From NCBI GenBank assembly GCA_020536535.1, contig JAHLWZ010000870.1, forward strand, positions 1,156 to 65,155: DNA of 64,000 bases, read 5' to 3'. Below the pieces are notes generated by a model that did no database searches, had not been told where the DNA came from, and was given only the letters and a program-made list of their open reading frames with translations. A program made the translations under genes and the position numbers. Below are positions 17,521 to 22,013 of this stretch, piece after piece (within the stretch, counting starts at the first letter, position 1; each line of letters starts with the position of its first letter). Source of the DNA: Pelomyxa schiedti (taxonomy: Eukaryota; Protista; Evosea).

Positions 17521-20500
17521 TTACAGTGTTTGTAACATAATCCAAGAGACGGTTGGTTTATCCAAGTCTCTTCCATACCACTGATACTGATAAATTGGTT
17601 CCCTATGTGACCTTGGCTTCTGTGCCGTTTTAGGGTCCTTTGCCACAACCCTAACAAGCAGCCTCCTTCTCAAAACAGGTTGTTCTTGCTGCACCTGATA
17701 AGCAATATTCAGCTTTGGAAGACTGAGGTCAGGCCTCCACTGAACAAGCATGTCACAAGGGAAAAGTGATGCCATTGTGCGCTCTAGCTGAAAAGGAGGC
17801 TCTGTGACCCTAATGGCACTTTTGGGAAAATCCGGGTTGATGTTGAAGCTGACTGAGGAAACTATCTGGCCGGAATAAGGACCCCGTCCCACAACGCTGA
17901 GGAACGCGGTGATTGCATACCGGCCTACGTCGTCGGCCCGCTTTGCGGTGTTACCGAATTCCAGAATCAGGTGGAATTCGCCGGGAAGAAGCGGCCGTGG
18001 AAGGGGTACTTTTGTAATTGTGGTCGTGCTAGTGCTTGGTGTAGAATTCGTAGTTGAAGATGATGTTGTGGTTGTGGGATTGTTTGATGTTGAAGGTGAG
18101 GGAGCTTCCAGAGACTGAATGTGAGGTTGGGGACAGAGGGCAACGGGACAGTCCTTTGGATTTATTCCGAGGGACCACAGGCCGCACTTTGCACATAGTA
18201 AGTGCCGGCAGGGGCTAAGTCTGAGCCAAGGGGAAAATTCCACTGGGCTGATGGCTGTGGTTGTGGGGGATTGTGTGTTTTTCTTGGGTGGAATTCTTTG
18301 TTCTGTGGGAATTCCAGTCCGCTTTGGTGGATTCGTTACGGGTTTGGAAGTTGAAGTGGTGGTAGTGCCAGATTTTAAAGGTGGAGCTGTAGGCTTGTAA
18401 GTTGGTATTGGGTTCCTGGACGATTCAGTGTTGGTTGTTTGGGAAATGTATCCTGGTAATCGGGCAGCGATTTCCTTTCCACAAGCGTGGCAATGAGTTT
18501 CTGCAGCTTCAGCAACGAGTCTATTTTCTCTCACTTCTTCACTCTCTACGTCTTCCTTTGTTTCCTCCTCAGCAAACAGGTCAACTTCCCTGCATTTCCG
18601 CAATTCCTCAGCTGCAGCTCTTTCACATTCAACTTGAAATTGGAATGCACTACAATCCGGAGCATTAAGCCCGGATTTTCCTTCTTGAATCGGAGCCCAT
18701 TGGTCATTATACGGCCACTCTCGGTCGAACGGTGTCATCCACGCCAGTATACCACCACAATCTTGCACAGTAGCAGGTAAAGTGGCTTGTTCAGAGAAAG
18801 AACAACTATCGTGTTCCTGAAACATTTGGAGTAGAATTTTCCATAAATTCTGTCCGTTCCAGTACGGCTCTCGGGATCTTGTATATTCGTAGTAATGGCA
18901 GCAAGGTAAAATCCTTTTTACAACTCTCCCCACGGACACAGGATGGCCGAGATCATCTGTATCATAAACGAGTAAGGTCGGTTGTTGTATTACCGAGAAT
19001 CTCTTTGGATCATGTGTGACAGGGTCCATACCAGCAAGATACTTGGTTATGGCAGGGAACTCTACTACAGCGTTGAAAGAAGAAGCCGTTCCCTGTGATG
19101 AACCCATCAGCAGGTGCGCTTTTTTGTGTCCTGTGGCCGCAAGACATTCGGTAAGAAATAATCCAGGATAAGATCGTATCGTTTGTCTATTTCCTGGTGA
19201 CCTCCCATAACCGGGGCAGTCTATCTGTACAATGCAAAAAGGTAAAGTTTTTCTGTATGCCTCCAGGAGCTGAAGTGAAAGTTGGTTCCACCAAATTGAC
19301 GAATTTTCAGGCCCGGATCCATGAATGAAAAGAAGTACCGGATTTGCAAGGTCCCCTGCCACTCGGGCAAAAACTTTCCCGTAAGACGATGTGGAAATCC
19401 AGCATGTTCTTCTCCTCCAAGCTACCTCTGGGTCAGGATAGTCTCCAGAGACTTGACCAACATCAAGCTCCTCCACTCGCTCAATGGAAGTGAGTGAGGT
19501 TACGTTTTTTATTGCTTTTGCAGCTGAAGCTCTTAGCAATGTACTATACGTCTCAGCGGTATTCTCTATGGCCGGACTAACATGCGCAAAGAAAATTGTG
19601 TGGGAGGAACCCCCCAGTGAATCTTGCAGGAGCCTAGTAAGCACAGAGTCCCGGTATGGAATGAAAGATTCACCCTTGACAATTGAGTCAATGACTCTGT
19701 GCAGAACAAGAAGATCGGAGTTTATCTGCACCGCTTGCGTGAAAGTAACGCCGGTGGCATGCGACCTATTTACATCCTCACTTCCTGCCAAATCCACCAG
19801 ATTGATCTTGCTGATGAAGCACTTAACCCTCCCTTTTACTCGGCGTGGGTCATTGCTTCCGTCCGTAGCAGCGACGGGAATTGGTACTCGCTTCTCCACA
19901 TGAAGAGTGAAAATGGCGTGAGAGCGTGAGCTGTATTCGTTCAAATCAGTTGATGCCGTGGCTCTCTGTTTCACTCCTTTGGAAATAGCATCCAGAACTT
20001 GCTCAGATGTCTCCACAACAATCTCAGTTGCTCCAACAATCTTTACTGCATTCCCAGAAGTCGCACTAGCACCAGATTCGTGATCCGCGCAAATCTTGAG
20101 CTTGGAACGGGATTCCTTTCGCGACAAGAGATCAAACACTTGTCCGTTGTAAATCTCCACAAAGCTGGCTCTGACCTGAAACTGCACATTGACATTAGCG
20201 GCAGCACTAGCAGATTTTGACCCGGTCCCAGTCTCAGGTACATGCGAACTAGATTGGGCTAGTGTAGATTCGTGAATGAGAGAAAAAAGTAGCCTGGCGG
20301 AGCGCGGAATCACTCCCATCATTGCGGGATGCAGGCTCAGGGTGCCACCGGGGCCCAGCATCGTGTGAGTTTTCCCGCTGGCGGTTTGCCCATAAGCGAA
20401 TAACGTCGCGTTGTAGCCTTCGACTGCACGGCGGACGAGGTGAGCCACGTGAGAAAACACAACAGACTGAGTGGCCTCGGGCCCAAAGGCTCGATCGAAA

Positions 20501-20688
20501 GTCCATTCAAACGACGATGAAGACGTTGAGGAGGAGTGAGTTGTGAGGGAGGGCCTGAGGCCCGGGGCGCTGAGAGTCACAGTGTTGGACGACGGCTCTA
20601 CTACAATTGTGGGAGGGCCCACACTGCCCTCCGCGAGTGGTCTCACCCTCACAAAACACTCTACACTGCAAACGTTCCCTTGCTTCAT
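17521..20688 (-). CDS. Kinesin motor fused to alpha/beta-hydrolase, RING-like and YEATS-like domains; intronless
   Basis: Single ~1055-aa ORF. Kinesin: GQTASGKT, NEYSSRSH, DLAGSE, IPYRDSVLTRLLQDSLGG. Hydrolase: LFIHGS, IDCPGYGRS, GSSQG. RING-like: CHAC...CRHLLCAKC..CPVALC. YEATS-like: VSSVSFNINPDFPKSAIRVTEPPFQL. First ATG is at 20688. Confidence 0.9.
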   Translation of the reverse strand: MKQGNVCSVECFVRVRPLAEGSVGPPTIVVEPSSNTVTLSAPGLRPSLTTHSSSTSSSSFEWTFDRAFGPEATQSVVFSHVAHLVRRAVEGYNATLFAYGQTASGKTHTMLGPGGTLSLHPAMMGVIPRSARLLFSLIHESTLAQSSSHVPETGTGSKSASAAANVNVQFQVRASFVEIYNGQVFDLLSRKESRSKLKICADHESGASATSGNAVKIVGATEIVVETSEQVLDAISKGVKQRATASTDLNEYSSRSHAIFTLHVEKRVPIPVAATDGSNDPRRVKGRVKCFISKINLVDLAGSEDVNRSHATGVTFTQAVQINSDLLVLHRVIDSIVKGESFIPYRDSVLTRLLQDSLGGSSHTIFFAHVSPAIENTAETYSTLLRASAAKAIKNVTSLTSIERVEELDVGQVSGDYPDPEVAWRRRTCWISTSSYGKVFARVAGDLANPVLLFIHGSGPENSSIWWNQLSLQLLEAYRKTLPFCIVQIDCPGYGRSPGNRQTIRSYPGLFLTECLAATGHKKAHLLMGSSQGTASSFNAVVEFPAITKYLAGMDPVTHDPKRFSVIQQPTLLVYDTDDLGHPVSVGRVVKRILPCCHYYEYTRSREPYWNGQNLWKILLQMFQEHDSCSFSEQATLPATVQDCGGILAWMTPFDREWPYNDQWAPIQEGKSGLNAPDCSAFQFQVECERAAAEELRKCREVDLFAEEETKEDVESEEVRENRLVAEAAETHCHACGKEIAARLPGYISQTTNTESSRNPIPTYKPTAPPLKSGTTTTSTSKPVTNPPKRTGIPTEQRIPPKKNTQSPTTTAISPVEFSPWLRLSPCRHLLCAKCGLWSLGINPKDCPVALCPQPHIQSLEAPSPSTSNNPTTTTSSSTTNSTPSTSTTTITKVPLPRPLLPGEFHLILEFGNTAKRADDVGRYAITAFLSVVGRGPYSGQIVSSVSFNINPDFPKSAIRVTEPPFQLERTMASLFPCDMLVQWRPDLSLPKLNIAYQVQQEQPVLRRRLLVRVVAKDPKTAQKPRSHREPIYQYQWYGRDLDKPTVSWIMLQTL

Positions 20689-20754
20689 TTGCACCGTTTT
20701 TTCGTTCTTGCATCTGTTCGCCGAAATGATTAGAAACCGTTTTTTTTTGTGGCA

Positions 20755-22013
20755 ATGAGGAGGCCAGAGAACTTTAGTGAGAGCGAATGGAGGTCAGTGT
20801 TAGATGCCGTAACGGCGGCGGATGAGACAGAGATAATGTCTTCGGTTGGTTCGTCCACTACCACTACATCCAGTCGGCGGGGAGGAGGTCGGGGGGGTAG
20901 TCGAGGCAGGCGGGGACGACGAGGAGGAGGAGGAGGAGGAGGAGGAGGAGGCAGCAACAATTATGGGCACCCATCAGACTACGATTACCCCGACGACTAC
21001 GACCCAGACTCTGAGCTTGTGTTCTTTGACGAGAAAAGAGGCGGCGGTGCAATGGGCAAGAAGGCCAGCTCGGCGGCGCTATCTGTCAACGACTTTGAAG
21101 GTGTTGGGGTAGACTGGGGGCGCAGGCCTGGGAAGGGCAAAGGAGGCGGAAAGAGGCGCCCGATTGTCAAGGAATCGGACTCGATGTCCATCAAGGAGTG
21201 CTCTGCCTTGGCTGACCAGGTATTTTCGTGGATGGAAAAAATGATACATAGTGTACATGTGGGTTCTTTGTTTGTTCTTTGTTTGTTGTTTGTTTGTTTC
21301 TTTGTTTCCATTTAATGACAGAGGTCCTAAGTACCCGTTGGAGCTAATTATGGAGGCCGACCCTACTGCATTTAAAGCAAGGATGTCTGCTGCCAGAATT
21401 CGCAGTGCTTCCAATGGTATCTATCACGCTGAATCTCTACAATCAATATATTATTTTCCAAGAATACTTGCCAACATATATCCTGTTGCCAGCTATGTTA
21501 ATGGGTCGGACCTCCTATGGAGGATATGGTTGCCAAAATAACAAAGGTATTTAGCACAGCTTGATGCTACAACCAGTGGAGCAGCTCGTGAAATTCTGGG
21601 TTTACTGTATGGCCATTTTGTGCTTATATATGACAGAGATCTCCTCCGGCACTCTTGCTTGGCAGGCAAGAAACTTCGTGTGTGCATTCCACCAGATAAA
21701 CATATATTTTGCAGCCAGGAATGTGGAGTAATCCACATTGGCTCCAGTATCATTAGTGATATGACAGCCGGCGACACAAGCCAGTATGTTTTGTTATTCA
21801 TTAAAACACGACCTGGCACTTATTGACAAACCCAAAACCAGATACCAACTGGAAAGGGAAGCCTTGGAGGCACATGTAAAGGACAAAGAGGGCCTGCTAA
21901 TCTGGTTTGGCATTCATGAATTCGTACACCTCTTTATCAGGCCCCACACCAAGGAATTCTTTGCGTCCGTTTGCACTTACGCAGATTCACACCCCTTCCT
22001 CTTTGGAGAGTAG
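20755..22013 (+). CDS. RGG-rich protein with C-terminal HExxH zinc metallopeptidase-like domain (YgjP/WLM/SprT-like)
   Basis: N-terminal RRGGGRGGSRGRRGRRGG tract; C-terminal IHEFVHLFIRPHTKEFF (HExxH-x4-H); 3 introns. Confidence 0.65.

Follow-up and report, generated by a model that had tools for sequence, protein, structure and literature searches.

Kinesin tails normally consist of coiled coils and cargo-binding modules. Among the RING E3 ubiquitin ligases, MID1/TRIM18 is microtubule-associated and is attached via its COS box. The alpha/beta-hydrolase ABHD14B has been reported as a lysine deacetylase (PMC9270251), and its family is defined by an S-x-S-x-S nucleophile elbow, a Ser111/Asp162/His188 triad and an H-x4-D acyltransferase motif (bioRxiv 10.1101/2023.07.30.551196). 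Here we describe an open reading frame (ORF) from the anaerobic archamoeba Pelomyxa schiedti in which a kinesin motor is followed by a cap-less alpha/beta-hydrolase domain, a RING finger and a YEATS-like domain. It lies on the minus strand of a stretch of 64,000 nucleotides (GenBank assembly GCA_020536535.1, contig JAHLWZ010000870.1, positions 1,156 to 65,155 of the forward strand), which is called the window below. An earlier sequence-only reading had treated the protein as a singular four-domain fusion. That view did not hold, as nearly all of 46 homologues from several eukaryotic supergroups share the design. The ORF is almost certainly a real P. schiedti gene belonging to an old, conserved and apparently undescribed kinesin family. 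The new part is the conserved, uncharacterized enzymatic tail; the kinesin itself is of a known kind.

Domain architecture and distribution of the family

The motor domain was recognized by Pfam PF00225 (Kinesin, E-value 1e-86, 291.3 bits against a cut-off of 29.3, residues 49-395) and by Microtub_bd (1e-20). In the translation, the P-loop G-Q-T-x-x-G-K-T (residues ~101-108), switch I S-S-R-S-H (~255-259) and switch II D-L-A-G-S-E (~301-306) are intact. The best PDB match was KIF4 (2.4e-53); kinesin-5 and kinesin-1 came within about one order of magnitude of it, and KIF15 within a few orders. Because the E-values for kinesin-4, -5, -1 and -12 were nearly tied (2e-53 to 4e-48), they point to no single kinesin family. 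Motor and hydrolase domain lie only ~30 residues apart, and ~45 acidic helical residues precede the RING finger. The intact motor and the lack of a long coiled-coil stalk, as described from the sequence in the earlier reading, were thus both confirmed.

Using the tail as the query, 46 homologous proteins were found. Nearly all of them keep one order of landmarks: HGSG, GSSQG, D-x-G-H-P, a C3(H/C)C4 RING and F-[DN]-I-N-P. The set includes proteins of the bdelloid rotifers Adineta and Rotaria, the green alga Cymbomonas and the dinoflagellate Symbiodinium, together with MMETSP/EukProt transcripts flagged as complete, and the family spreads over Amoebozoa, Opisthokonta, Archaeplastida and Alveolata. 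Because complete transcripts show it, the single-chain design is transcribed as such in other species. Many members carry a WW domain between hydrolase and RING (Pfam WW for P0033), and none is present in Pelomyxa or the rotifers. In the databases the homologues are named only "kinesin-like" or "kif4" and carry Pfam labels for kinesin and hydrolase, and the YEATS relationship is missing from their precomputed annotations. In an ESM Atlas feature search, the best cluster was a 75-member rotifer "Kinesin family protein" with a score of 0.78, which is too low to count as evidence and is consistent with the other results.

The sequence-only reading had left room for the architecture being that of an already described kinesin family. 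Full-text literature searches found no description of a kinesin with a hydrolase, RING and YEATS tail, and the text of the kinesin phylogeny of Wickstead et al. 2010 (PMC2867816), searched for RING, esterase and lipase, has no such tail architecture.

A quick maximum-likelihood tree grouped Pelomyxa with the rotifers (Shimodaira-Hasegawa-like approximate likelihood ratio test (SH-aLRT) value of 100). After P0002, the rotifer proteins P0003-P0016 are the nearest to the Pelomyxa protein, and they have the C-x4-C ending of the RING and the lack of a WW domain in common with it. Two histories would fit this closeness: vertical inheritance within Amorphea combined with wide loss, or a horizontal transfer to bdelloids. 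In three metagenomic proteins (P0046, P0110 and P0132) the RING and YEATS-like domains come before the hydrolase, and no kinesin domain was detected; possible explanations are tandem genes that were merged, wrongly predicted models, or a genuine permuted form that lacks the kinesin.

TABLE 1. Features of the Pelomyxa schiedti ORF and their positions in the window
Feature	Window	Strand	Residues	Basis or remarks
Whole ORF	17521-20694	-		1057 aa including a mechanical GTG start; zero stops
Kinesin motor domain	19504-20670	-	~9-397	Pfam; intact P-loop, switch I and switch II
Cap-less alpha/beta-hydrolase domain	18730-19428	-	423-655	Pfam, alignment, AF2, structural matches
In-frame GT...AG stretch, 114 nt	19225-19338	-	453-490	Spliced out as an intron in P0001
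Acidic helical linker before RING	18496-18627	-	~690-733	Sequence and AF2 helix (model residues 2-11, pLDDT >90)
RING finger, C3HC4 ligand set	18133-18492	-		C735, C738, C829, H831, C834, C837, C849, C854
P/T-rich low-complexity insertion in first RING loop	18229-18462	-	~745-822	AF2 pLDDT <50
YEATS-like beta-sandwich	17524-17988	-	~903-1057	Pfam, profile, Foldseek, AF2
AF2, AlphaFold2; pLDDT, predicted local distance difference test; P/T, proline/threonine.

Gene structure and transcript evidence

As the sequence-only reading had it, the ORF is uninterrupted, and its 1057 codons are stop-free across all four domains (Table 1). The probable start is the ATG of residue 3 at window position 20688, where the public protein P0001 starts as well (1017 aa, "Kinesin motor domain [Pelomyxa schiedti]"), and the stop codon occupies positions 17521-17523. 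In a word-based search, P0001 was the same as the ORF apart from a 38-aa gap. The gene was present in one copy in the P. schiedti genome; a second copy was looked for there and none was found. Four parts of the ORF were matched with 100% identity by contigs of a single-cell RNA-seq library that belongs to the same study. A 9.6-kb contig of a second run (X2) contained the whole stretch with one base different, and the base composition of the ORF was like that of its flanks.

These data also bear on an artifactual origin of the architecture, by merging of neighboring genes or as a product of misassembly or contamination. A long intronless ORF does stand out in an otherwise intron-rich genome, where 12 ORFs of at least 250 aa were counted in the 64-kb window, and this speaks for an artifact. 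The same domain order in >40 orthologues, including complete transcripts of other species, speaks against it, as do the absence of stop codons through all four domains, the 9.6-kb contig of the second run and the flank-like composition. A gene-fusion artifact was rejected on these grounds and appears extremely improbable.

Three further observations were made at the locus. The 3.2-kb ORF without introns is conspicuous where long ORFs are rare, and it may be a retro-copy or a recent acquisition. The one difference in the X2 contig is a G>A exchange at window position 19394, inside the ORF, and could reflect either an allele or the assembly. Immediately upstream, an oppositely oriented ORF of 188 aa with long Gly/Arg-rich runs (RGG-like) extends from 20749 to 21315 (plus strand); it may be a divergently transcribed neighbor.

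A false intron in the public gene model

Within the 38 residues missing from P0001 lie the oxyanion strand HGSG, an NSS block and a Trp, and none of these varies among 30 aligned homologues. In addition, an RNA-library contig over positions 19154-19282 spans the supposed acceptor site unspliced, with genomic carry-over being possible. The conservation of residues 453-490 is enough by itself to mark the 114-nt stretch as coding and the intron of P0001 as false. The public P. schiedti protein model therefore needs correction, because 38 conserved residues are missing from its hydrolase core.

The alpha/beta-hydrolase domain

The domain following the motor was identified as an alpha/beta-hydrolase by Pfam, with Abhydrolase_1 (7e-8) and Abhydrolase_6 (1e-6) both above their cut-offs. 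Its motifs are HGSG from residue 458, GSSQG from residue 531 and D-x-G-H-P from residue 581. A model calculated with AlphaFold2 (AF2) from a 30-sequence alignment reached a predicted local distance difference test (pLDDT) value of 89.3. It showed the canonical beta-alpha-beta core, a strand-turn-helix at G531-S-S-Q-G and nothing inserted after beta6, that is, no cap. The domain thus has the G-x-S-x-G elbow following beta5 and the H-G oxyanion loop following beta3 that mark the serine hydrolases of this fold. The best fold match was 3bdi, a "CIB-like hydrolase" of 207 residues (Foldseek E-value 1.6e-10, template modeling (TM) score 0.80), which superimposed on the model over 191 of its 207 residues at 2.2 A with a VIA Z score of 22.4. 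Human CIB/ABHD14B (1imj) aligned over 188 of 208 residues with a Z score of 18.6. By sequence profile, the closest solved structures were C-C bond hydrolases (HsaD, 4.7e-10; BphD), with 3bdi at 6.9e-7 and 1imj at 1.6e-4. The description of a compact cap-less hydrolase with an HGS oxyanion loop and a GSSQG elbow thus proved correct.

The alignment of 30 members contains 32 invariant columns. Among them are His458-Gly of the oxyanion loop, the elbow G531-S-S533-Q-G with Ser533, Asp581 and His584; Asp578 and His561 are nearly invariant. Asp581 aligns with the catalytic acid of HsaD (within E-D), which we take to be Asp241, and residue 162, at which the 1imj match stops, is the catalytic Asp162 of CIB. 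The canonical catalytic His of the beta8 loop (residues 605-611) is absent in all 30 members. The His of the HsaD G-H-W motif falls on a variable position (D, N, F, Y or C) just before the conserved Trp612. The invariant His584 is instead located on the beta7 loop, three residues after the acid Asp581. A missing C-terminal His, with a His in the acid-loop motif in its place, had been noted as a caveat in the earlier reading, and the 30-member and HsaD alignments agree with it. Judged from these alignments, the classical catalytic triad is incomplete in the whole family. In the same 30 members the ABHD14 nucleophile motif S-x-S-x-S is not present, G-S-S-Q-G being invariant instead, and neither is the H-x4-D motif with the catalytic His188, since the beta8 loop has no conserved His. 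Because S-x-S-x-S, H-x4-D and the triad His are lacking, the hydrolase is ABHD14B-like in shape only.

The missing His could mean that the domain is a pseudo-enzyme with a structural or ligand-binding role like the NDRG proteins, and that the whole protein is a kinesin-anchored RING E3 or a scaffold. The non-catalytic NDRG1 and NDRG2 are indeed among the structural matches (Z 18.5-18.9), and the canonical His is missing from every aligned member. On the other side, no variation is seen across several supergroups in the nucleophile Ser, in the oxyanion H-G, or in the acid Asp and the His that follows three residues later. A pure scaffold is weakened as an explanation because catalytic selection accounts for these residues more simply, and we consider the pseudo-enzyme a fair rival, but an unlikely one.

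The RING finger and its linker

A C3HC4-like RING split by a P/T-rich (proline/threonine-rich) insertion had been proposed at positions 18492-18133. All eight zinc ligands were located there and the coordinates were exact. Seven Cys ligands do not vary among 25 sequences, and the fourth ligand is either His or Cys, the latter in the alveolate-type members. A clade with Symbiodinium and Cymbomonas (P0021, P0023-P0025, P0027, P0028, P0031, P0032, P0034, P0035, P0039 and P0040) has C-x-C for C-x-H and so a C4C4 finger. The P/T-rich insertion is common only to Pelomyxa and its closest relative, P0002. In the AF2 model of the RING, the beta-beta-alpha core was kept at pLDDT 80-89 and the insertion was disordered.

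The YEATS-like domain

The C-terminal domain was assigned to the YEATS fold by several routes. Pfam YEATS (PF03366) matched residues 942-987 with 23.4-23.6 bits against a cut-off of 22, and the same profile matched 18 of 27 family members. When a profile of the 27 YEATS-like domains was compared with the PDB, all 38 matches at E-values up to 10 were YEATS domains; the best, TAF14b (5.7e-5), aligned along almost the entire domain, with the N-terminal Y-G-N motif included. The AF2 model had a pLDDT of ~95, and the best 50 Foldseek matches were all YEATS domains (E-value ~4e-7, TM score 0.55-0.71). The YEATS assignment of the sequence-only reading was therefore sound, and a mismatch of the fold was checked for in these comparisons and not seen. 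The motifs of the domain are Y/F-G-N-T, I952-N953-P954 and M974-A-x-x-F/Y-P-C980, there are two extra C-terminal strands, and the alignment has six invariant columns. An exhaustive search with the YEATS-like profile yielded 198 cluster representatives at E-values of at most 0.001 among 1.84 billion; among the matches listed, most were at the C-terminal end of a protein or were fragments.

Profile alignment to TAF14b and Yaf9 was used to locate the pocket. The loop L-H-x-S-F of the readers corresponds to I-N-P-[GD]-[FY], in which I, N and P never vary, and G-W-G-E-F corresponds to M-A-[RS]-x-[FY]-P-C, with M in 26 and C in all 27 sequences. The acyl-lysine cage of known readers is built from His, Ser/Thr and Phe of loop 4 and from Trp/Tyr and Phe of loop 6, with the acyl group sandwiched between the His and the Trp/Tyr. 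Here His is replaced by N953 (27/27), Ser by G, D or S955, and Trp/Tyr by A975 (19/27); only two cage aromatics are kept (F/Y956 and F/Y978). The aromatic cage is thus degenerate, as had been suspected. The invariance of the replacement residues suggests a pocket put to a new use and not one in decay, and the canonical mode of reading acetyl- or crotonyl-lysine has probably been lost.

With both tail domains in hand, the functional proposal of the sequence-only reading can be assessed. It pictured a microtubule-tracking module in which the YEATS domain reads acyl-lysine, an ABHD14B-like deacetylase erases the mark and the RING acts as ubiquitin ligase. Such a module might act on acetylated tubulin or its partners. 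The fold calls behind it (YEATS, cap-less CIB-like hydrolase and RING) stood. The confirmed YEATS fold, the two retained cage aromatics, the near full-length superposition of ABHD14B, the family profile match to 1imj and the reported deacetylase activity of ABHD14B all favor the proposal. The reader and eraser functions were not supported: the ABHD14B motifs are not present, the closest hydrolases by sequence are the C-C bond hydrolases and not ABHD14B, and the His and Trp/Tyr of the YEATS cage are missing. An acyl-lysine reader and eraser of this kind is distinctly unlikely.

A possible mechanism

We favor, as somewhat the better bet, an old uncharacterized kinesin family whose members would be RING E3s bound to microtubules, with the hydrolase as an accessory and the YEATS domain repurposed for recognition. 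The order along the chain is motor, cap-less hydrolase directly after it, WW in many lineages, acidic helix, RING and YEATS-derived beta-sandwich. In this scheme the motor would put or move the protein on microtubules, and the YEATS-derived domain, together with WW where present, would pick the target via its remodeled pocket. The RING would recruit an E2 and ubiquitinate the microtubule-associated target. The hydrolase-like domain may act on this target too, through serine-hydrolase chemistry of a non-canonical kind, or serve as a ligand-binding pseudo-enzyme. From the observed domain identities, their conservation and their order we infer E3 activity, motility, a substrate and hydrolase chemistry, and the functional mechanism taken by itself seems to us evenly poised between right and wrong. 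A complex prediction of the hydrolase against the YEATS-like domain, run without family alignments, scored 0.00; it gives no verdict and was not used as evidence.

Several points weigh against the proposed microtubule-bound RING E3. The canonical RING has a first loop of 9-39 residues and a last pair C-x2-C. In Pelomyxa, 90 residues lie between the first Cys pair and C-x-H, and the last pair is C-x4-C, an ending common to Pelomyxa, P0002 and the rotifers; most homologues are canonically spaced. The Pfam RING scores of the Pelomyxa finger (14.6-17.7 bits) are below the cut-offs; the end-to-end matches of homologues count in favor of the RING, P0132 scoring 24.1 bits against a cut-off of 21 and P0017 scoring 25.3 against 27 (E-value 1.4e-5). 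The missing beta8-loop His makes hydrolase activity uncertain, and the YEATS pocket residues differ from those of every characterized reader. Finally, the RNA contigs, being of single-cell origin, could include genomic DNA.

A more far-reaching version can also be formulated, in which a pan-eukaryotic, motor-borne kinesin would "read, remove and ubiquitinate". It would combine a serine hydrolase with a relocated His, contributed by the acid loop in place of the beta8 loop, a RING E3 and a YEATS reader retuned to a mark other than acetyl or crotonyl, for example a modification of tubulin or of a microtubule-associated protein. We regard this version as quite improbable.

Two enzyme-type domains combined with a reader fold of the chromatin type make an unusual tail, and this tail has been conserved in amoebae, rotifers, green algae and dinoflagellates alike. 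Were the domains active, the protein would be a means of bringing both ubiquitination and hydrolysis directly along microtubules. If the recognition role is true, it would also provide the first case of a YEATS-derived domain that functions away from chromatin and has a different, conserved pocket. None of the usual model organisms has the family, and this is probably why it has gone unstudied.

Comparison with known systems

The protein shares with the kinesin superfamily, of which KIF4 (kinesin-4), Eg5/Klp61F (kinesin-5) and kinesin-1 are the nearest solved members, an N-terminal motor in which the nucleotide-binding and switch motifs are complete. It differs from the characterized kinesins in having no coiled-coil stalk and in carrying hydrolase, RING and YEATS-like tail domains, which we found in none of them. 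With CIB/ABHD14B (1imj) and the archaeal "CIB-like hydrolase" Ta0194 (3bdi), the hydrolase has in common a minimal cap-less fold of ~200 residues that aligns over nearly the whole chain, and the position of the acid is shared with CIB. In contrast to CIB/ABHD14B, it has GSSQG in place of S-x-S-x-S and, three residues past the acid, a His that is invariant, with neither a beta8-loop His nor H-x4-D. The YEATS-like domain has the beta-sandwich, the Y-G-N motif and the pocket-flanking strands of the acyl-lysine readers AF9/ENL, GAS41/YEATS4, YEATS2, Taf14 and Yaf9, but it has rewritten pocket loops and two extra C-terminal strands, and its context is cytoskeletal and not chromatin. The eight zinc ligands, the C-P-x-x-x-C / C-P-x-C end motif and the preceding helix are shared with the C3HC4 RING E3 ligases. 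Compared with MID1/TRIM18, microtubule attachment in the Pelomyxa family would come from a built-in motor and not from a COS box.

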